Below the pieces are notes generated by a model. The model searched no databases. It saw only the letters and a program-made list of their open reading frames with translations, and was not told the DNA's origin. A stretch of 64,000 nt of DNA from Trichoplax adhaerens (Eukaryota > Animalia > Placozoa): NCBI RefSeq assembly GCF_000150275.1, contig NW_002060945.1, positions 3,061,172 through 3,125,171 of the forward strand, written 5' to 3'. Positions 3,863 through 20,157 of this stretch are shown here, in pieces. The position numbers and the translations under genes were made by a program. Each line of letters begins with the position of its first letter. Within the stretch, counting starts at the first letter, position 1.

Positions 3863-6800
3863 GAAGGATGGTACTATAGGGATCAAGGCGTAGGGAAAAG
3901 AAAAATGAACAATTTCTATTTATGATGAACGATTGATATCGTTATTTGCCTTGCAATTAGTTCTTTCGAGGAAGGCCTAATCTTCTAAATAGTTGAAGTT
4001 CTGTCGTAGCAATGTACAACGGAGAGAAATCTCTGATCTCTACTGAACTGGAGTAATATCAATGAATAAAAGAACCATTTCTTTGACCTTCATTAGCCAT
4101 AAGATGGTTCTACATATCACAATGTAGTACATTCTAGTCATGCCTTAAATGCCCAATACTGTAAAAGAAAAAAATCGCTCTATTACTCAAATTAGTCTTA
4201 TTAGAGCAGGTTGAATAGTGGGTAAGCTGCAACTGATATTTAAACAAATAGTGGGCACGATTATATATATGCGTGCATACTAGGATTAATTGTAATCTTG
4301 CTTGCCTAGCAAAAAGAGTATTAGCTTTGCAATTAGCGTAGTTAACTTTGGGAGACTGTGTTGAATAGCATTTACTGCTAGTTTTGCTCCCTATAGCAAC
4401 TATACTAACGGATTACAGTAGGAAGAATCCATAAGAAGCTTGAATAAACTGTAGTAGATGTTTGAAAAGTGAGCTGTTTTTAAGCTAACGTTTTCTATTA
4501 TCTAGGCATTAATAATAGTTTTCAATAATAACACTTTCAAGCATTATCCAAGTAGGAAAAAAATAAATTAATACAATTACTCGATAGATAATAAGACAAC
4601 AAAGGATAATTTAGATCTTCTTGGCAACTTTATCTTTCAGTCTACTTAAGATGATGTTTTCGTATCGCACTACTATAGCAAAATCGTTAAAGGAAAAATT
4701 GATTTAGGGATTTTTTTTATTGAATTGAGCTTGTGCTTAATCGGAAGCGGATAAGGAAGACAAGTATAATTAAGTATAACTTATTTTATAGACTCAACTA
4801 ATCTAGATTAATTGATGAATGCCGATAGAGTACCATCACACTCATTACGTCAAATAACTTTTTATTTCATGTCATATCGACAATTTCAACGACAAACTGT
4901 TGCTTTAACAACTTAGTTAGACTAACATTGAAAATTCCTAGAAATGTTGATCCTAATTATTATTTCGCTACTCATTGCTGATGATGACGTATAAAGATAA
5001 ATGTATATAATTATAATACTATTGACCGATTACAATAATCCTATTTTAACCAGGATAACAAAGCAGTCTTTTAGTAGGATAATAGTGAGTGAGATTTGTG
5101 TTACATTTTGAAATACTAATCAGACGTTATAAATAACTCTGTTCAACTGCTCGTTGTTACTACTATACACGTATAACAATAATTGTATCTCAACTGAAAG
5201 GTGGCAGCATTGCTAGTAGTACATCATTGCTGTTGCGCCAATGTTCAATTTATTTAATAGAATGTTTGTTGTGATCTCCAAGTAGTGCTAAACTTAAAAT
5301 AATCCTCTAGGAAAATTAGATCAGACCAATGCTTTGCTTACTGGCCTTATGGTAGGCATGAATGGATAAACGTATTTATTTCTGTTTAAATTTTTCAGAA
5401 TTTAAAAATTTAGTAACTTTCTATTTATCTTCCGCTTTATGATCGTTAGCCACGGTATACACAAATACTGTATGAATGGTATTTTTGTAATGTACAGTAT
5501 GTCGTTCCGTTATTATCTTGATCGATTAGACATTAATTTTAAATTTATAAAATCATGCTATCTAGCTCGATTTTAAATGTGAAATCACTCGCTGATATTT
5601 CTACTAATTTATTCTTGCTAGATATTGTAAGATAGGACGGAACAGTCAATTATATCGGTTTCGAGGTCTACGCTGTTACTGTAATAGGATAGCCAACTAT
5701 ACCGTTAATTAGTTCGATATATCACGTAATAAATAGTAATAATAAATGAAATGTACGATCATGATTAAATTTTTTATCTTAGCGATCAATTAAAGCTAAG
5801 ATTTAATTTCATTATAGTAATGTTTCGCTATTATTCAGGGTTATTGAAAAGTTATTTATTCAAAATTATAAATTAAATCTGGATATAATTCGATATAATC
5901 AACTAGAATTATTCGGCGTAATATACCGGTACTGTAAATATTCCTTACAGTAAGTACCGTAAAATACAAATACAGTAGTACAAAATAGTTATGTGTTATT
6001 ATTGTTGTTTTCATATTACGTAGTGAGTCAACAAAACATGCAGCATCAAACTGATATACGAGTATTTACACGTAACCTATGCATTTTACAAAGTCACAGG
6101 TAGTAGAATGAATCTGATCCGGCCTAATATATAGCTGTATCATAGACTGTTAGAAACCAAAAATTTCGAATAGTCTGTGGCTATTCTGTCTTTGTATAAC
6201 AGTGATTTGTAGATAGGACAGAATAGACCACTGTGCACAATTACCGTATATGAGTTAAAGAATTGTTGTAATTGATAGGCAATTGATATTTTTTAGTCTT
6301 TTCATTTATCCAAGAAGGTATAGTTGAATTACTTATTAGAAGTATTAGGTTTAGTAACGCAAATCTAGACACTGTAAAATCTTAAGAGATGCTACTGTAT
6401 CTTTTAAATTAGGTACATTTACACGATGGGCATTTTTTAAGCGCATTGGTTATTTCCTAGCTATGGAAAGCAAGGAGAATATTATAATTCGTATAGTAAC
6501 AGCATGCCAGTTTAAAGGCTGATTCCGTTTAAGTGCATGTATTTGTGTACATTAACTTGCATGGTCTAGCACGAAACTTAATATAAGAAAACATACGCAT
6601 AAGTGATTATAGAAGTTGCGAAACGAATCAACACCGAATTTTGTTTGTAACCGACTATACGATCGTACAGGGTTTCTTTGTCCTTGCGTTACGAAAATTG
6701 ATAAGTATGTTTTCGTCAGCAGATTCGGTCCGCAGCGACTATTTCATAGTGGCAGCTACAGTGGACAGTATGATAAGTGTATACTTGAAATTTGACGACC

Positions 6801-8051
6801 ATACCTAGCTAGCTGTGCTCTTAACAAAAAATATGCGCTGTTTTTCCCAAATTCGTAGCGTTCATATGCCTCGATATTTGTAAGTCAAATTGCCAAATGT
6901 TAAGAACACAACGTAACGAATTTAGTTACAAAAGTTTAGAATAAATGAACAGCGGTGGGAAATAACAAAAATTAAAACAACACTTTAATAGGTTTATTGC
7001 CAATTACGTACTTATAAGAAAACGTGACGCAAAGCATCTCTACCAAAGGTTGCTGAAACACAAACGAGAGGCGACAAGTTGGTAGAATTGAATCACAATC
7101 AGTTATCCGCAACATTCGTTCATTATGGACTTTAACTTTTTACGATATTTATCACATTAGTATATCATAATGCAGGGCAGGAAAATAAGTGCTATTTATT
7201 AATTCCGTCAGTTAATAAAAAGCGCCACACTTTCCCGATTGCAATAGCTAAGCTATTATTCAAGTATATTTTATACATTAAATTTTTATCCTTAACAATA
7301 TGCATCTATGGACGCCATACAATTAATTTAATCGCCTAGCGGGTAATAATTTTTATCTACGCCATAAAGAGTCTTTAGTAAGTGGTCTACTTTAAGGCTT
7401 TCTGATAAATCACTTTCTTTAAATGGTCACTAGAACCAGTACATTAGAGCACAACAGCAAGCATCAGACTCTAAAAACACACCTGCGGTGCAAAAGGCTT
7501 TAGAAAGAAAGAATTCAATGCAGAACAGATCCCAAATCTATCACTTAGCACAGTTAGATTGTAAGCATACTTAAAATCAGCAAGCTAAAAATATTTGCGA
7601 ATCAGTCCAAACAATGGCAGAGTACTATACCATACATTTAATGTCAATGTAGTTATAACTGATTGAAAGTATCCAGCAATGATTTACTAATTTTAGTAAT
7701 ATTACAGTTATTTTGGTGACTAGTGTACATACAATTTTTCTAAAGAATGTAATGCAGAAGCTTAATGTCAATTACATGTTGAGTTACAAAAGTTTTCTAT
7801 CTTAACGAATCTCAATAACTAATAAAGATAAGCAATCTAAGTGCGAAAATCGCATACCTGCATGTATTGCTAATCTATTAGAGGTAAAGGACACCCTGTT
7901 TGAACATACGCGAATGCTCAAGACAGAGTGCTTTTCCATAGAGGTATTTAATAGACGATATAAAGACATGGCAAAGTCTGCTAGTGAAAGTCTTACAGTA
8001 AGATTGGCTACTAAAATGCACCACATCAATAAACGCAGTTATGATAAAGGA

Positions 8052-11000: not shown

Positions 11001-13753
11001 GCTGAGCTGATTCGAAACAAAACGAGTAATGTAGAAATATCGTACCGCACGGATGAAATTGAATATGTCTAGCGAGGAGGAGGTAATAGAAAGCGCCTTC
11101 GGTAATATAGAGCACTACTGTATGCTACTAACTAATTCTATGCCTATCTACCAATCTAAAATTATAATTCATTATTAATATAATTAAGTATGAGACCAAA
11201 AATCGGATAACTAATTAGTATTACAGTTTCAAAAATAAGTAATTATCAATTGACTACTCGATTATTATCGACAATCAGCTTCCGTCGTTAATGTTAATAG
11301 CGATGAATTTGTACTGACAGTGAGAATATTCTTAACATACGTATCACCAATTCACGATAGCAGTTTTTATAACACAGCAACGAACAGTAAACTGAAATTA
11401 CGATGGCTTATATAATCGTTTATCTAATCAATTTAGTAACGGATTGTACTGTAGGCACGTGGCTATTATAATAAGATATTAGTAATTCAGTATTATAAAT
11501 TCAAGAAGTTGGATATTTGTAATTAGGCACTAATTACTAAAGTGGTTTAGTTTACCGTACACCAACTAGTTCGGTTAGAGTCATTACGTAAATGTAGTCA
11601 ACGCCAGTAATAAGGTGTAATTATAACTGTCGCCGCTGATTGTAATTTAAATCTGTGGAAGCGTCAATATTCCATCGCATCATTAAATGCTTTGTATATC
11701 TATAATCGAAAAGTGTAAATTGTCCAAACTGTCGGAAGACAGCATCATAGGCACGAAATATTGTTGCACATGTATTTGAATTTTGTCGTTAAGTAAATAG
11801 CAAGTCATGGTGTTTAATACACTGTATGATTGCATACTGAGGTATGAAGAGAATTCTATGCCTACAGCTAGTCTACAGGCAATAAATGCTGTTTTAGTCA
11901 GTGTATACCGATTACCGTATGCTTCTTAATTGTGGTAATATGACAGTGATTATAATTATTAACATGTACTAAATTCTTAGTTTGCTTACAGGATTTCGAT
12001 TGTCAATGAAGTATATTCATATTGTACAATGCAGTACAGTGAGGCAATTTAAATTTCTGAGACGATTACTATTTGACATACTATAATATACTATAGGATG
12101 AAGTTACCAATACGAATTTTGAATAGAGTACTAGAATCATTCCAGATCATCCACAAACGAGGAGAGACGCAAGCTAGCCTATTCTGCTGCTACCTCACTT
12201 GTACAGATGTTTTAAGTATTAAGCCAGTTCTATTATTATTTACTCGTTCACATCAGGTCATTTCTAGGTAATCTAAATATCCATTGCTGAACTGTACTAT
12301 TGTTGGCTGCTGTAACTATCTTCTACGTTTAGCTTGTGTCGTCAGTACAGTAGGCAAAATTATGGATAATTTATAACATCAGTCATATTTGGATACTGTT
12401 TATACAAGATCAAAAATTCGAAAGAGATGCAAACGGTTACGAGTATTTAACAGAAACATACGAGTGTATAGTATCGAATTATATCACAGTTGTTGTTAAT
12501 TCATTATGTAGTGTAAGATACTGCAATTCCTATGGAAGTATACTATGTATAATTGAATTATTTTATCCGTATACAATAAGATAGTCTAGTAGATAACCCT
12601 TAAAATTAGATACATTTTTATTTCATAGCCCAAGATAAGATTAAGATTAATAATGTAATCAATACTAATATGCGTAGAAACAGCTGCGAAAGGATTCCCT
12701 ATAACGTTAATCAAATACTGTACTAAAAACTTGGAAATTCTATTTCACACGGCAAGGATGGAAATAGAGCAATTTCAATGATGTTATGATTTTGAACAGT
12801 ATCCAATGAAATAAAGTGTCTTTGGTCCCTTTTCCGCATACCGAGCGGTCGGCAGATAGGTAAGTATACGTACATTGGTGTACAAACATACGGATCGAAA
12901 GGATAAAAATTGGCCACGGTATGGAGTATTGAAGAAGTCGCGATCTCTCATGCCATACTGTTGAGCGGCATGAATTGAATACGTAATCGGTGTTGGATGC
13001 ACTGTCAATCGATCAATGTATGGTTATTGTAAAAATTCGAGTTGTCGAGTTATGTGTGATATATATTACGAGTACAGTATATGTATGTGTCTATGCAGAA
13101 GAAAAAAGCTATTAGATGGACGAGTCAATTTTCCCGTTCACCATGACTATTGGAATATACGTGTCTATGCAGTAGAAAAAAGCTATAGATGAACGAGTCA
13201 ATTTTTCCGTTCCCCATGACTATTGATAAAGGATTCTTTCAAACACAATCTATTATAGGTTGACTAGACTACACGAGTTACTACTCGGTGTCCATGAACA
13301 CTATGCACACTCATCGTAGTAAATTGATGATGGTGAAAAAACAGCTAAGATTATCTACGCCTAATTGACACAATGTGGTTCATTGCTGCTGGTCAATGCT
13401 GAGCCAGTTCAAACCGACTATCCTATAGTGGCTATACATTCACAATTTTCGAACGCTATAAGGCTTTTGCAGTCTTGTTATTAAAAGATTCAACTCTAGA
13501 CGTTGCTTATTTTTAACACTAGACAAGATTAAATTTACGACGAGCATTAAAATAGCGTTAAAATGTTCAATCAATTCTTCTATCAGACAACTGTGGGCCA
13601 TTGGGATAACATCGATGGAAGTACAGTACTCTAGTCACTATAGAGTTTCAGTGATCCATCGTCATCGTTGCACTACGGTCAATTGGTACTGCCAACTGCA
13701 ATACTTACTTGGTTGGCTTTATTGATTTGTTTTTTCAATCCAGCGAAAGACAT
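8052..13753 (-). CDS. SH3GL: Endophilin-A (N-BAR + SH3; SH3GL1/2/3 family), 9 exons, ~364 aa
   Basis: Exons 13753-13709 ([15 protein letters not shown]), 10443-10375 ([18 protein letters not shown]), 9788-9572 ([14 protein letters not shown]), 9484-9423, 9310-9239, 9125-9059 ([16 protein letters not shown]), 8910-8810, 8666-8563, 8409-8052 (SH3: [20 protein letters not shown]...DENWMEG...GYFPTTYV). All GT-AG with consistent phases. Confidence 0.96.
13087..13225. repeat. Two-copy tandem duplication, period ~74 bp, in endophilin intron 1
   Basis: gtgtctatgcag(a/t)agaaaaaagctat(t)agatg(g/a)acgagtcaatttt(c/t)ccgttc(a/c)ccatgactattg at 13087-13152 and 13161-13225. Confidence 0.9.
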
Positions 13754-14489
13754 CTCGTTTAATTTGAAATAATATTAAATGGAGGGAAACGAATCGTCAG
13801 TCTCTACGTTCTTCCACAATCCGAATAACGCGATAGTTATTGTACAATATTCACGAGCAGTTACCAAAAGGTGATGCAAAAATAGTCTCCCACTTTGTGA
13901 AAGGAACCAACTATAAAAAAGAAGAGCAATGACTTGAGGTACTGAGCGTACTATCAGCAGTGTACTCCGTTTTGTAAGCAGCACGCTGCTCAGCGTTCAC
14001 TGTACACTGTACACTCTACACTGTGGACAGTACAGTACTATCCACGCTGACCTTTCCATTGGTTTGACTGGGCTTTACAGTACACAGTACTGTACTACTG
14101 GATCTCCTGCTAAGTACTGTACTATACTTGGACATCACCAAAATTGGACGACAAAGAAAGAAATTTCATCCTGGCCCATACTATTATATAATTATCTAAA
14201 AATAAACAATTACAATGTGCAATGGCTTCTTTTTCCTCTATTTTCTACATACAGTCTACTACACAGTCGGTAAACAGGAGCAAGATGAGAGGAGACAGTC
14301 TATTTCGCTCAATGTTCTATTACTGTAGACTGGTGGCTGAGTTTGAAAACTGCTTTTACTGTTCAGAGAGCTAAGGTCTTAATCAAGCAAGCCTGCGTTT
14401 ATCTGAGACGATCCATTTCAAAATACTTCCTTTTGGTGCTTCATTGATTTCTATGGCTAGAAAGAATGATGGCGATTGATACACAACGG

Positions 14490-14519
14490 TATACTGTACA
14501 CTGTACAGTGTACAGTATA
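14490..14519. repeat. Perfect 30-bp palindrome TATACTGTACACTGTACAGTGTACAGTATA
   Basis: The sequence equals its own reverse complement. It lies between the divergent endophilin and hydrolase genes. Confidence 0.95.
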
Positions 14520-15327
14520 GAATTGATGGCAATGTAACATTGAAACATTATACTGTACACAAAAAAGGCAAGATAAAAGTAATGTTTACACTTATACTTG
14601 GAGAGAGAGAGAGAGAGTTTCTTCCATGATTGCCAAATATGGTAATCGTTCCAGGACATCTATATTAATGAAGGCAATGGGCTGGACTGAAAGTCGCCGA
14701 AAATGATGATGTCATTGGCTTGGAGCGCGTTGCTTACAGTACACTCATACAGTACAGTAAAGGAGGCGTTACCATGCTAAACCCTTTTTTTTCTTGGTAC
14801 TGTGGCCGTACACGACGGTAGAACTTCAATTATGAAGAACTTAGACTTCCTACGTATATTCTGTCAACGGATTCTTGTAATTTAACTCTTCCTCTATCGA
14901 TTGACTTGTATTTTATTGAAAATCGACAGAAACTTTATTATTTTATTGTCAAAGTTTTTCGGGAAAATGGACTGTGACAAACGGTACAGCAGAGACCCTC
15001 TATGATAGTATCCACAAATCCCGTGATTGTGATTGTCGGAACTGATTACTGTTTTCTGCAACAGGGCTTGTAGCTACTATACAGTGTACACTGTGCAGAA
15101 CAGTGCACCATATTTGCATATTCTTTTAACATCTCCGATTACAGCTAACCTACTGTATAACTTACTCATATACCAGCACTTGCACGATAAAGATCGATAT
15201 TATTGTGGCATTGACAATATTAAAACTTCAAAACGTGTAATAAGCATACTGTACCTTACCATTATATCATAAGATACTTGACCCACGCGAATCATTTCTA
15301 TACTCTACAAGTGTACATGGTGTCGCA

Positions 15328-16218
15328 ATGAGGGATGATTACGTCTGGTGCTATTCTGCAGAGGGATTTCACAAAGTCTACTACCGCCAGTGGGGAGAAA
15401 GCAATGGAAATAATGTCATCGTATGTTGTCACGGTGTTATGCGGAATTTACATGATTTCGACTATATTGGAAAGACACTAGCAGATCAAGGCTACTGTGC
15501 CGTTTGTCCTGATGTTGTTGGACGAGGCGAAAGCGATCATTTTCGAGATGCTAAAAATTATTCTTATTATCAGTACATCCTAGATATTACTGCAATTGTT
15601 GCCAAGGTCGGAGCTAAGACAGTAGATTGGCTGGGTACCTCAATGGGTGGATTGATGGGGATGATGATTGCTTCACAACCAAATACGATCATTCGCCGCC
15701 TGATAATGAATGACATCGGTCCAATCGTGTTACTAGCTGCCTTGAAACGGATCCAGGCTTATGCAGGTAAAGAAGCATATTTTAATAATTTCGACGAAGC
15801 TTGCCAGGCGATGCGTAAGAACTACGCACCTTTTGGAATAAAGAACGATGAGCACTGGATGCATATTTTCAAGCATACCGTTAAACAGCTACAAGATGGT
15901 CGATGGACCATCAAAGCGGATTCTCGTTGTATGACGCAAGGTCTTGATCCTAGCCATCAGGAAAGCGATGCACTACCAGATATTGATGAAGATGGAAATA
16001 TTATTTTTTGGAAATATTGGGAAAAAATTTCTTGCCCAGTTTTACTGACCCATGGTGCAAACTCTGATTTGGTAACAGCTGAAGTTGTTAAAACAATGAA
16101 GCAGTATCCCATACAGCTAGAGTCCTATTCATTTCAAGATGTAGGTCATGCCCCAGCATTAATGGAGCCTGATCAGATCAGTATAATTACTGCTTGGCTT
16201 AAGAAAACAACTTTATAG
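15328..16218 (+). CDS. Intronless alpha/beta-fold hydrolase (Abhydrolase_1/6-like), bacterial-type, 296 aa
   Basis: Single ORF with HG oxyanion motif (CCHGVMRN), CPDVVGRGESD, nucleophile elbow GTSMGG, LIMNDIGP, acid in HGANSDLV and catalytic His in VGHAPALM. This motif order is typical of proteobacterial hydrolases. Confidence 0.93.
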   Translation: MRDDYVWCYSAEGFHKVYYRQWGESNGNNVIVCCHGVMRNLHDFDYIGKTLADQGYCAVCPDVVGRGESDHFRDAKNYSYYQYILDITAIVAKVGAKTVDWLGTSMGGLMGMMIASQPNTIIRRLIMNDIGPIVLLAALKRIQAYAGKEAYFNNFDEACQAMRKNYAPFGIKNDEHWMHIFKHTVKQLQDGRWTIKADSRCMTQGLDPSHQESDALPDIDEDGNIIFWKYWEKISCPVLLTHGANSDLVTAEVVKTMKQYPIQLESYSFQDVGHAPALMEPDQISIITAWLKKTTL

Positions 16219-16535
16219 ATCCAATCTCTCTAACTTTGAAATATTAACATAGAATAATAATACGTATAATGCTATTCAGTAGTACACAACTGTATAACCG
16301 AAAAGGCTATTAATTACTGCTCAAAATTGATATACTGTACATAATTATCCTAGAATAGAACACATATTCCAGCTACATCAATATTTATACCGCCTACTAT
16401 TTCAATTTTCTGTAATATCAAATTATAGCTGCATGATAATAAGAATTCATTATCATTGGCTAAAGTTGTGCAAACGCTCTGTAATAAATATCATTAATCT
16501 ATACTGATGCAAGTTATAACCTTCAGCCATTATAC

Positions 16536-16560
16536 ATATACTGTACATTGTACAGTATAT
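16536..16560. repeat. Inverted repeat ATATACTGTACA-T-TGTACAGTATAT
   Basis: 12-bp perfect arms with a 1-nt spacer; same core as the 14490 palindrome. Confidence 0.9.
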
Positions 16561-17672
16561 ACCTGTAATTTTGATGACAATTTTAGAGCAAATGAAGGAA
16601 TCATGAATTGAAAAGAGTGATAAGGAGTGTGTGAATATACAACTTCAGTAGTATTATTTTATTTGGATAGTCATGATAATATTCTAACCGACAGCTCTTG
16701 TAAACGATAGCAAAAATCTTCATTTAATTAATTGATTTTAGAGGAGTTTTGTTTATTGTCAATGGTTTTGATATTTTGTTAAAACTATGAAAACTATTGA
16801 CAAAACACAAAATTCCCTTTAATTTTATTCGATGCACGGTGTACAAGTGATATAATTGCACTGCATTAAATGATGGCTATCCACTACATTTAAAATGGGA
16901 AAGATCATAATGTCATCACACTATCGCTCATGACATCGTAGATGTACTAAATCTACAGTATTACAATATCTGTACTTCGATTCGAATGCACAAATCGCTG
17001 CGAAAACTGTAGTAATAGCTCAATGCCGGGTGGAAAGCAACCCGAGAACATGTGTAACAACTTTATTACTTTACAGTTATTAATATGTCCTGTATACCGA
17101 TCTATAATATCAAGTTTGTAGCCTCTCGTTTAACTCTTTTAAATGTAGATTTCACACGTTTCGAATGGCAGCTGCTAACTGTGTTCGGTAGTTCTGTTCA
17201 GTACAGTAAAAAGTACTGTAAGCACTGTACTATACACTGTACACTACAGTAGTGTACAACAATTTGCACATTGCCTAAAACCATAGCCTGAAGCTTATAC
17301 TGTAGATGATAACGGTTTGAACCGAACCGAACCTTTCTCAGGTCTACAGTGAAACCTAACTCAAGGCGTTTTTCTTCGGTATCTAGGCTACGCGCGTATC
17401 TACGTTACTGCCCAATCAGCTACTGCACGCAATCATCGACACAGTAATAGCGGTTAAATTCATATTTCATATCTAATGAGATGCGCTTTAGTTTCTTCAG
17501 TATCGAGTTTTACAACCTTCATCAGGATTGATAATACAGTAAATTGACGGTAAAGTATAGGGGCATAATTGTGGTAGACAGCTTTCTTGCCCAAATTATT
17601 GAACAAATTTCTACTTTGACGTTGAGAAACTGCAAATTTCAACCGGTTATCTGTAAGAGTTTGGAGCCCACG

Positions 17673-20157
17673 ATGACGACAGTACGAGAATGTGTTCTAC
17701 TTGCCTTTGCCTTTTGCCGCATTGGGTTATATACGGTAGGAAATTTTTTCAAAACCCCTTGAAGTGCATTCTATTCCTATTTTATAGTATTCTATTGATA
17801 GCACTCAGCCATATCGTAACCAATGTTCGATCTCGTTCACGCGAAATGAGTTGGTATATTTTCCCATTTATATACACGTATCTACAAAATGGATATTATA
17901 TAGCTTATTATAAGGTTATTATTTACATTTATCTATGCTCTATTTACAGTACTGTATCTATAATATCTATATTCTAGTATACGTTACTCTTTATAGTGTA
18001 AGCGTTGTATTGTGAACTAAAGACTGTTCAGTAAAAGTAGAAAAATGTTATCGCCTATCTACAGTATATAAGATTGGTAGCAGTTTAGTATGCCATTCTC
18101 CTGTATGGAAATGATTTTACTGGATATTCGATGTATTTGCTGTAACATCTATTGAAACCATCTTACAGATAACCTCCTTGACTATGCTTGGCAAAAGTTA
18201 GTTACTTTATATCACTCTAGTCGCATATAAAATTGCAATAATCCAGAGTAATTTTATTAATGGTTCATAAAATATTTCACCAAATAATAATTAACAGATA
18301 ATTAATAACTTGACAGTCCAATTTTAAATACGCACATGTGGCGGTTAAGTATACACACTGATCATGATAACACCATCATAATTCATTAAATCGCATTTAC
18401 TAATTTAGTTTAGATGGGAACTGACATACAATATACTGTATTATTATACCTTCAGATGCTATTTCGTTAAGATACCTACTCAAATCTATACAATGAGTTG
18501 CGTAACTATTGTGGGTTTAGTATTAATTTTTCTACAAAGCCATAATGTAGAAAAGAAGATGTATTGATTTTAAGTATTTATTTAAATCTAAAATGATAAC
18601 AAATAAGTACTTCTAACTGAATGAGTAAACGACTAATCGTTTGATGAATTGCCAAATGTGTAAGTAATCTTAGCTCGTGGGCCTTTGCGCGCTAACAATC
18701 AGTCGGCCAGTGGCTTATCATCTTATAGTTAACAATCTTTATGGTCTAGCATCAATTGCCCAATTTTACTAATGAAAGCAGCATTTTTTAGTAAACAATA
18801 CTTATTCATCTTTAATTAATGAGATAGCATGTACCACAGCATCTTCGCTACGTAGAGGATAACAATTATAATTATTGTTAAACAATAATATTGCGGTTTA
18901 TATAAAATTAAGTACGATAAGCCTTTCCATTTTATCTAATAAAAAATTTATAGCTGTTTCCTTTAGAGTGTAGTCAAGTTTTAATTTAATATCTGCAGTG
19001 CTACAGGAGAATTTTCTATGGACCTCCCCCTCCCCCAAGGCCGGGCTTTTCAGCAATTTGCATTGGAATAACTGGAGCTGGAAAGTCCAAAGTTCTTGCT
19101 GTTTTATGCAGTGAAAAGGATGAAATCATACCTACCCAAGGTAATAATTTCATTCCATCAGGTTAAGCCTTATCAAAAATTGATCTCATAGAAAAATTAT
19201 AATCATATAAATACTCCAGGGTTTTCAATTAAGGATGTTCCTTTTGAAAATGCCATACTTCATGTAAAAGAAATTGGAGGTAATTTGACAAATTTGTCTA
19301 TCTAAAAAGGTATACGTGTATATAGCTATATTACCGATAATTCTACACCTTTATCAGCAATGAAATCACCTATATCAGAATTATCGTGTAATAAAATATA
19401 CCTGCCTAATAATACTCTAGTTCATATTAATTCCATATTAGATGCTCAATTCTATATTTACACATAGCAGTATGCATTCGTAACTACTTATCTGAAGGGT
19501 TTGCGTAACTTAATTCATTTTAGGTAGTGAAATGCTTCGAAAATACTGGAAAAAATACTACCGTGGGGTACAAGGAATTGTAAGCAATGCGTAGCTTGTG
19601 CATACTGCACAGATAGTTGATATGGTTATTGTTATCTACTCATACAGAAAGCTATTCGGTTAATAAATTCTTGTCATCACATAGATAAACAGTATTGTAT
19701 ATGCTAACACTATTTTTTTAATTTTTTAGATATTTGTTGTAGATAGTTCTTGCGATGAAGACACACTAAAAATAGCGTCGGAAGAATTTTGTAAAGCAAT
19801 TATGGATCCTGATTTGGCTGGGTTGCCGTTACTCGTTCTTCTTAATTCGATAGACCAATCGAAAGCCCGTAGCATTGAAGAAGTTAGTATTCTGCTGCTT
19901 TTAACATAAGATACGACCCTGAGACTATCTCAAATATTGATCAATTAAATTCATTTTATAACGCTGTCATGATATTGACAATATTTCATTTCTAGATAAC
20001 TGATGCTTTTAACATTAATGAATTGTGCTCTGAGAGAAAGTGGTCCATTCGGAATTGTTATGCCTGTGATGCTGATTCGGCAAGGTCCGCTTTTAAACCT
20101 TTCATAGAAAATATGCTGGAACAGTATGGCCATTCTAATGATAATAATAGGCTATAA
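17673..20157 (+). CDS. ARL15: ADP-ribosylation factor-like GTPase 15, 6 exons, ~211 aa
   Basis: Exons 17673-17735, 18999-19140 (GPPPPPRPGFSAICIGITGAGKS...PTQG), 19220-19279 (FSIKDVPFENAILHVKEIGG), 19524-19579 (LRKYWKKYYRGVQGI), 19730-19882, 19996-20157. The Pro-rich pre-P-loop segment and E-x-GG in place of DxxG are ARL15 hallmarks. The first exon is less certain. Confidence 0.92.

Follow-up and report, generated by a model that had tools for sequence, protein, structure and literature searches.

The window analysed here, a 64,000-nucleotide stretch of the genome of Trichoplax adhaerens, carries at 15328..16218 of its plus strand a single-exon gene for a bacterial-type alpha/beta-fold serine hydrolase, set among spliced animal genes. 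Taken together, the evidence makes it very probable that this gene stems from a real and old transfer from bacteria to placozoans and is now a working host gene. Its close relatives outside the placozoans, wherever they are named or have usable gene context, are all bacterial, with at most 47% identity. We propose that horizontal transfer would have brought the bacterial gene into the nuclear DNA of stem placozoans before Trichoplax split from at least two more divergent placozoan lineages, and that the likeliest donor would be a marine proteobacterium akin to the SAR116-type Alphaproteobacteria, either free-living or associated with food, and not the rickettsial symbiont. The gene would then have been retained by its host, with an unspliced mRNA of ~1.5 kb, a promoter region shared head-to-head with an endophilin gene, an AATAAA signal, and strong purifying selection on the protein.

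The gene and its catalytic triad

An earlier note, made from the letters of the window alone, had described a single-exon open reading frame (ORF) of 296 residues at this position, and the description stands: from its ATG start the frame runs exactly over 15328..16218 (+), with 296 codons and a stop, and the RNA contigs that lie over it are unspliced. The product is a member of the alpha/beta-hydrolase fold serine hydrolases, with a match of residues 29-276 to Pfam Abhydrolase_1 (PF00561) at an E value of 7e-18 and 65.6 bits (cut-off 25.8), over profile positions 1-240 of 245. All the motif blocks singled out in that note (CYSAEGFHKVYYRQWG, CCHGVMRNLHDFD, CPDVVGRGESD, VDWLGTSMGG, RRLIMNDIGP, HGANSD, and VGHAPAL) are found in the translation, and the Ser-Asp-His triad that it had called intact is not only present but invariant in a 29-sequence family alignment, where S105, D247, and H274 follow the canonical Ser-acid-His order with a GTSMG elbow. 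The codon of the Ser105 nucleophile, in the elbow G-T-S-M-G-G, lies at 15640..15642 (+), and its column aligns with the same motif in 4ose and 3bwx, two solved bacterial hydrolases; the codon of the catalytic acid, Asp247 (GANSD), lies at 16066..16068 (+), and that of the catalytic His274 (GHAP) at 16147..16149 (+), within the invariant columns G273, H274, A275, and P276. The hydrolase also shows the full set of motifs of the 4ose/3bwx subfamily (HGxxRN, VGRGxSD, WxGTSMGG, NDxGP, and GHAP) together with full-length similarity.

The hydrolase is single copy in the 105.6-Mb assembly (1414 contigs), where a search for a host paralogue gave none at E<=1e-3, and its translation is letter for letter that of database entry P0121, which lies on a 9.66-Mb contig of T. 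adhaerens' own record. Alpha/beta hydrolases without introns are not rare in T. adhaerens, where the Pfam model is matched within a single long open frame at no fewer than 12 further loci.

Bacterial affinity and the question of the donor

The motif blocks had been taken for those of proteobacterial hydrolases rather than of animal ABHD proteins, and database searches, Atlas neighbours, the tree, and the gene contexts of the sister clade all agree with that reading. In a word-indexed search of 5.8 billion protein clusters (nr, UniRef, EukProt, JGI, ENA, and Logan), 773 matches were obtained at E<=1e-10; among the best 120, the placozoan protein itself is the sole eukaryotic entry, no animal outside the placozoans appears, and the next best match is 47% identical. 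An exhaustive phmmer search of 1.84 billion representatives at 50% identity gave 5620 matches and nothing closer, with P0003 at 47%, P0128 at 42%, and the others at 42% or below; the best 150 of these representatives are nameless, and source names were looked up for ten. Cluster representatives that match the hydrolase at E<=1e-30 number 490. Among the best 80 named genomes, the relatives are 35-43% identical and come from Alpha-, Beta-, and Gammaproteobacteria, Bdellovibrionales, Legionellaceae, and cyanobacteria, and the Atlas neighbours of the protein are 98-100% Bacteria.

In a tree built with the model LG+C20+F+G4, all four placozoan sequences group together (support of 100 in the Shimodaira-Hasegawa-like approximate likelihood ratio test, SH-aLRT) on a long stem (0.65). 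Their sister clade has 14 members (93), and the two are joined with a support of 97; trees of 200 and 223 sequences agree with the placement. The five members of the sister clade that have usable contigs are bacterial by neighbourhood, the contexts being MltA/Smr/Tim44-like genes, FlhB/FliR/FliQ together with rplU-rpmA-obg, a Tad pilus, rpsF-rpsR-DUF2232-rplI-gatC, and LpxK/KdtA/MsbA/UvrA. Of the clusters in the sister clade, one bears the name Candidatus Puniceispirillum (SAR116) and a second stems from a surface sample taken by Tara Oceans.

Could the donor instead have been the Rickettsiales endosymbiont that lives in placozoans (RETA / Candidatus Grellia), a source at which the earlier note hinted? 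The solved structure that matches best comes from Rickettsia typhi (4ose), a rickettsial symbiont is passed on vertically in placozoans, and dapF, murA, and BPL_N, further transfer candidates in Trichoplax, look rickettsial (PMC3641634). We nonetheless regard this donor as improbable, because the Rickettsia homologue reaches only 31% identity with the placozoan protein (175.8 bits), against 40-47% and 275-298 bits for the sister clade. No Rickettsiales occur among the best 80 named genomes (Midichloriaceae, Grellia, and Ruthmannia lay outside this by-name search), and the assembly holds no second, symbiont-type copy of the hydrolase. The GC content of the symbiont is about 27-29% (PMC6057997 and PMC3641634) versus about 41.5% for the ORF. 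Finally, an intronless MhpC candidate, to which we return below, was judged nonrickettsial by Driscoll et al. (PMC3641634). The hint of a symbiont donor is thus not supported.

Our account of a transfer has evidence on the other side too, which concerns phylogeny and composition, treated here, and function, treated with the predicted chemistry below. The support values are SH-aLRT from quick trees only, without bootstrap values. Since no relative is more than 47% identical, the donor lineage is defined only loosely. The host-like AT content noted from the sequence is real, in that the ORF (GC about 0.416; GC at third codon positions, GC3, 0.365) is close to host exons (GC 0.34-0.42, GC3 0.27-0.35), but it is uninformative and gives no sign of amelioration either way, because the nearest bacterial genes have the same composition (0.43 and 0.36-0.39). 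Furthermore, a Trinity transcript of the protist Rigifila ramosa (EukProt EP00004), P0161, is a member of the family and 39% identical to the placozoan protein, and the approximately unbiased (AU) test does not reject a clade of placozoa plus Rigifila (delta lnL 3.27, p 0.41); the deep topology is beyond the reach of a single protein of ~290 columns with long branches.

The membership of P0161 and the result of the AU test are also what speaks for an old gene of eukaryotes, perhaps a legacy of the alphaproteobacterium that became the mitochondrion, that was inherited vertically and lost almost everywhere, persisting in placozoans and Rigifila. We consider this quite improbable. For such a history, the gene must have disappeared from every animal outside the placozoans, from fungi, and from almost all of the ~1000 EukProt taxa, and no other eukaryote is found among the best 120 matches or among the ten named of the best 150 representatives. 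The Rigifila transcript is nearer to Azospirillum (50-52%) than to placozoa, falls in free trees into a different clade that is distant from the placozoan one, and has an N-terminal extension of 140 residues, rich in Ala, Pro, Gly, and Arg, that looks like read-through of GC-rich bacterial DNA; this extension makes contamination or an independent transfer the likelier explanation of the transcript. The placozoan gene, moreover, is intronless. We therefore retain the transfer from a marine proteobacterium as the preferred origin.

Integration in the host chromosome

The gene is physically integrated in the host chromosome. Sequencing runs were mapped over 13000-18999 of the window, and two runs of DNA type cover that interval throughout, with a depth in run X6 of 41.5 over the ORF and of 44.4 and 32.2 over its flanks; a single DNA contig spans 14910-17292. 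(One run, X2, had been guessed to be RNA and behaves as DNA, its depth being flat even over regions that are silent in the true RNA libraries.) In the assembly of Trichoplax sp. H2, the gene lies on a 567-kb contig. The motif TACAGT/ACTGTA, which the earlier note had called host type, occurs at 9 per kb in 13000-15327, versus 3 per kb across the window and 0.1-0.9 per kb in bacterial loci, and is absent from the ORF itself. Dispersed repeats rich in this motif stand at 14000-14100, 14490-14520, and 17220-17330, where the depth of the DNA runs rises to 10-20 times that of single-copy sequence (up to ~1500 versus ~78).

Bacterial contamination or a chimeric misassembly is effectively excluded, because the depth of the ORF equals that of its flanks, host repeats lie on both sides, and the gene is found on large contigs in two independent assemblies. 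What can be said for it is that the original Trichoplax assembly does include bacterial contigs (PMC3641634) and that short-read contigs all break at the dispersed repeats on either side of the gene, where many false "joints" appear. Nevertheless, a 2374-nt contig spans the gene with host-type flanks, two further placozoan lineages have the gene within unalignable flanks that are free of other called genes, long residence is indicated by the dS of 1.57 between lineages, and no bacterial genes adjoin the hydrolase. A join to symbiont DNA, which had been named as one of two outcomes that would overturn the idea of transfer, is not seen.

The neighbours are those that the earlier note had named, spliced animal genes of endophilin and ARL15 type, as judged by splice-junction ends in the RNA of both and by SH3, BAR, and Arf matches; their exons were matched individually against domain models, with no joined spliced gene model. 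On one side, the first exon of the endophilin-type gene, followed by a splice donor, occupies 13709..14176 (-) (record 18 of the RNA contigs of library X20, whose loose end at 13709 runs into the next exon); it starts with MSFAGLKKQ, and its coding part is 15 codons long. Other endophilin-type exons on the minus strand match SH3, at the exon end, at 3e-15 and BAR at 3e-4, the latter with 21 bits, below the Pfam cut-off of 28.5. On the other side, an RNA contig places the first exon of the Arf-like (ARL15-type) GTPase gene at 17509..17735 (+), and both RNA runs show the loose end of a splice junction after 17735. The Arf domain is recognized at 1.3e-6 in an Arf-family exon at 19730-19906 (+); NDUFS4 and MRPL34 lie farther downstream, beyond the Arf-like gene. 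The hydrolase and the endophilin-type gene are arranged head-to-head with ~780 bp between their transcript ends. This divergent intergenic region (14177..14956, unstranded), rich in TACAGT/ACTGTA and with zero RNA depth over 14600-14799, is the putative promoter region of both.

Transcription and selection

Transcription was followed in two RNA libraries, X19 and X20, which are metatranscriptomes of the sister species and provide assembled contigs without an expression level. Record 5 of X19 is colinear with 14957-16473 and shows no splice, and contigs of X20 cover 14901-15073, 15191-15494, and 15533-16440, likewise unspliced over the hydrolase. RNA depth is zero at 14600-14799 and at 16600-17199 in both libraries, and the same libraries show splice-junction ends in both neighbouring genes; given these silent intergenic stretches and junction ends, the signal is not carried-over DNA. 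Expression, one of the checks that the earlier note had proposed, is thus borne out by contigs over the gene beside silent intergenic DNA. The unspliced 5' untranslated region is placed at 14957..15327 (+), its start being approximate and based on the contigs of X19 and X20, not on read ends. The 3' untranslated region is placed at 16219..16488 (+), with RNA contigs ending at 16473 (X19) and 16440 (X20) and the sole downstream AATAAA at 16483-16488. In record 5 of X19, moreover, the hydrolase transcript is joined at its 14957 start to sequence from 14838-14932 in inverted (minus) orientation; a hairpin or an artefact of assembly could account for this join, as could antisense transcription within the promoter region that the two genes share.

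Three further placozoan sequences allow the history of the gene to be read beyond T. adhaerens. The protein of Trichoplax sp. H2, RDD43736.1, is one residue apart from that of the window, at the last position (Leu296 -> Phe), a change caused by A>T at window position 16215, seen in the sister species as well as in another run. More divergent are P0002 (294 residues, from two Logan runs), which is 79-80% identical to the window protein, and P0122 (296 residues, from an ENA metagenome), which is ~90% identical to P0002 and ~80% to the window protein. The contigs of P0002 and P0122 align with the window over the coding region only and carry no other called gene in their flanks; the upstream flanks of the loci L002 and L101 have a motif density of placozoan style. 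We found no match to endophilin by tblastx or motif in the 1.4-kb upstream flank of L002, a short contig in which synteny would have to be recognized from an exon 1 of only 15 codons. The reading frame is intact in all four placozoan sequences, and comparison of the window with L002 gives a dN of 0.115, a dS of 1.57, and a dN/dS of 0.074, a combination that implies long residence under strong purifying selection. Hence presence in other placozoans and constraint, both suggested in the earlier note as things to look for, are found, and its word "domesticated" is apt on the strength of transcription and of purifying selection against a second placozoan lineage. The alternative of an integrated but decaying or neutral insert without function, which draws on the fact that neither substrate nor phenotype is known and on RNA evidence in the form of contigs with no expression level, is left with a negligible chance by four intact frames, a conserved triad, a dN/dS of 0.074 at near-saturated dS, and transcription of the hydrolase while the adjacent intergenic DNA is silent.

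Probable prior record of the transfer

As a candidate, the transfer has most probably been reported before, and events of its kind are known. Driscoll et al. 2013 (Genome Biol Evol 5:621; PMC3641634) screened the same assembly and reported 12 bacterial-like putative transfers on large eukaryotic scaffolds. One of these is an intronless "bacterial lysophospholipase (MhpC)," placed in a class "present in Rickettsiales but divergent," with a class mean GC of 39%, and described as grouping with assorted bacteria and explicitly not as rickettsial. The window hydrolase fits every descriptor given there for the MhpC candidate (intronless, bacterial-like and COG0596-type, on a large eukaryotic scaffold). 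MhpC is a label of COG0596 alpha/beta hydrolases, and JGI attaches it to bacterial members of this very family. Because the two main other single-frame hydrolase families of the genome lack close bacterial relatives, it is quite likely that the "MhpC" of Driscoll et al. is this gene, the match being one of descriptors and not of accessions. The names MhpC and lysophospholipase are not supported for the window hydrolase by any curated model. That paper gives no evidence on the expression of the MhpC candidate, on other placozoans, or on selection, and the hydrolase goes unmentioned in later papers on placozoan genomes and symbionts. What is new here is the transcription, the presence in several placozoan lineages, the strong constraint, the affinity with marine proteobacteria and not with Rickettsiales, and the likely mis-annotation as ABHD11 that is taken up below.

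Predicted structure and function

What chemistry might this enzyme perform? The AlphaFold2 model (mean predicted local distance difference test, pLDDT, 92.9; predicted template modelling score 0.92) has a canonical alpha/beta sheet and a helical cap at ~136-231, and a structure search returns at least 500 alpha/beta hydrolases of the PDB at E<=1e-3. After 4ose and 3bwx, the fold matches are the CurM thioesterase, E-2-(acetamidomethylene)succinate hydrolase, aryl esterases, and perhydrolases. We posit a classical serine hydrolase in which Ser105 of the GTSMG elbow would be activated by His274 and Asp247, the oxyanion hole would be formed by the His35-Gly36 motif and the backbone of Met106, and the helical cap would close over the pocket. 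Most likely, the enzyme would cleave by hydrolysis an ester, thioester, or amide that is small and soluble and perhaps bears a carboxylate; Arg39, Arg66, and Arg141 are invariant in the 29-sequence alignment, and a carboxylated substrate is possible on that account. We give a substrate of the ester/thioester class about even chances. As judged by reading the sequence, the fold appears to begin at residue 2 with no N-terminal signal peptide, so that the hydrolase is probably cytosolic.

The counterevidence announced above extends to the functional side of our account. No NCBIfam equivalog comes near its cut-off: the models for MenH, polyhydroxyalkanoate (PHA) depolymerase, dehalogenase, BioH, PcaD, and HsaD give 50 bits or less against cut-offs of 167-500. 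A literature search on 4ose and 3bwx found no functional study, and no member of the family is characterized. Among 84 bacterial loci whose neighbouring ORFs were clustered, no conserved neighbourhood was found. True neighbours such as penicillin amidase, ComEC, Orn/DAP decarboxylase, HemB, an AMP-ligase, and EamA each occur in at most 9 of the 84. With neighbourhoods not conserved and no characterized relative, the substrate is only a guess.

Several specific identities were considered and set aside. An MhpC or meta-cleavage C-C hydrolase is not supported by the HsaD model (19.1 bits against a cut-off of 400), nor is a lysophospholipase by the NCBIfam matches listed, which include no such model, nor an intracellular short-chain PHA depolymerase by NF050089, with 47.9 bits against 300 and a match to N-terminal residues 16-127 only. 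The sole large cluster of nonhydrolase ORFs at the 84 loci consists of spurious antisense ORFs that overlap the hydrolase.

In some Pseudomonadota, the hydrolase is fused to a Cation_efflux (CDF transporter) domain, as in P0132 (614 residues) and an Atlas cluster of 616 residues. This fusion is a possible functional lead for the family.

To go one step further, did the placozoan stem lineage capture the enzyme from the marine bacteria on which it grazed, and does the enzyme now perform a placozoan-specific metabolic step found in no other animal? We offer this as a doubtful speculation. If it were true, could the enzyme break down in the cytosol a bacterial or algal ester obtained in feeding, for example, hydroxyalkanoate oligomers or another carboxylated ester? 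Alternatively, could it control a metabolite exchanged with the intracellular symbionts?

Other hydrolase loci of the genome

Some of the other single-frame hydrolases deserve mention in their own right. A valacyclovir-hydrolase-type family (the label comes from Trichoplax sp. H2) of ~268 residues is expanded, with paralogues 37-97% identical, at G000:C1242 (L093, two copies), C1410:7143017 (L095), C1407:2251474 (L097), C1411:2201179 (L094), and C1411:8064553 (L098); its nearest named nonplacozoan match is a mite protein, at 34%. Two further single-frame hydrolases of 270 and 281 residues, at G000:C1411:2077095-2077799 (L090) and C1402:1085612-1086319 (L092), are 37% identical to each other and resemble 3-oxoadipate enol-lactonase (PcaD) at 130 and 106 bits, below the cut-off; the word-based search gives placozoan relatives only. 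Finally, a tandem gene pair with copies 64% identical lies at G000:C1398:343094-343426 and 348551-348913 (L089:1200-1883 and 6660-7346), and its long exon matches the bacterial haloalkane dehalogenase model NF002938 at 255 bits, above the cut-off of 241. The pair could represent one more hydrolase of bacterial type in the animal genome, or else a gene resembling Renilla luciferase.

Significance and comparison with known systems

Placozoans are among the simplest animals, feed on microbial films, and house intracellular bacteria. Strong selection on a bacterial enzyme across placozoan genera points to a lineage-specific biochemical capability acquired via gene transfer, and the gene is a well-documented addition to the few functional transfers known from bacteria to animals. 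The bacterial subfamily, including two solved structures, is without a known substrate, and the placozoan gene provides a second biological context in which to find one. We grade the practical gains as modest, and the interest as moderate to low pending a substrate or a cell type.

The nearest solved systems are 4ose, a putative hydrolase of Rickettsia typhi that belongs to the same subfamily over its full length (1.1e-50, TM-scores 0.89/0.93, 31% identical), and 3bwx, an alpha/beta hydrolase of Novosphingobium aromaticivorans (3.5e-31, TM-scores 0.81/0.84, 26% identical), both structural-genomics entries with function unassigned. The placozoan hydrolase shares with both the nucleophile elbow, the HG oxyanion motif, VGRGxSD, and GHAP. 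It differs from 4ose in an extra acidic loop of ~10 residues (~211-224, of lower pLDDT), and it is encoded in an animal chromosome, whereas 4ose and 3bwx are bacterial. Animal ABHD11, the name under which NCBI lists RDD43736.1, is likewise an alpha/beta-fold serine hydrolase of similar size; however, the best solved eukaryotic chains match at 5e-6 to 2e-4, against 1e-50 for the bacterial chain. With no animal relative among the best 120 matches, an identity with ABHD11 is not supported, in a judgement made without direct alignment to a reference ABHD11, and the label is probably an automatic mis-annotation. As to the type of event, the closest parallels are dapF, lysA, murA, photolyases, and GNATs, which have pathway contexts (such as lysine or peptidoglycan metabolism and DNA repair) of a kind not assigned to the placozoan hydrolase. 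Like it, these are intronless bacterial genes that stand among spliced host genes (PMC3641634 and PMC6879607).

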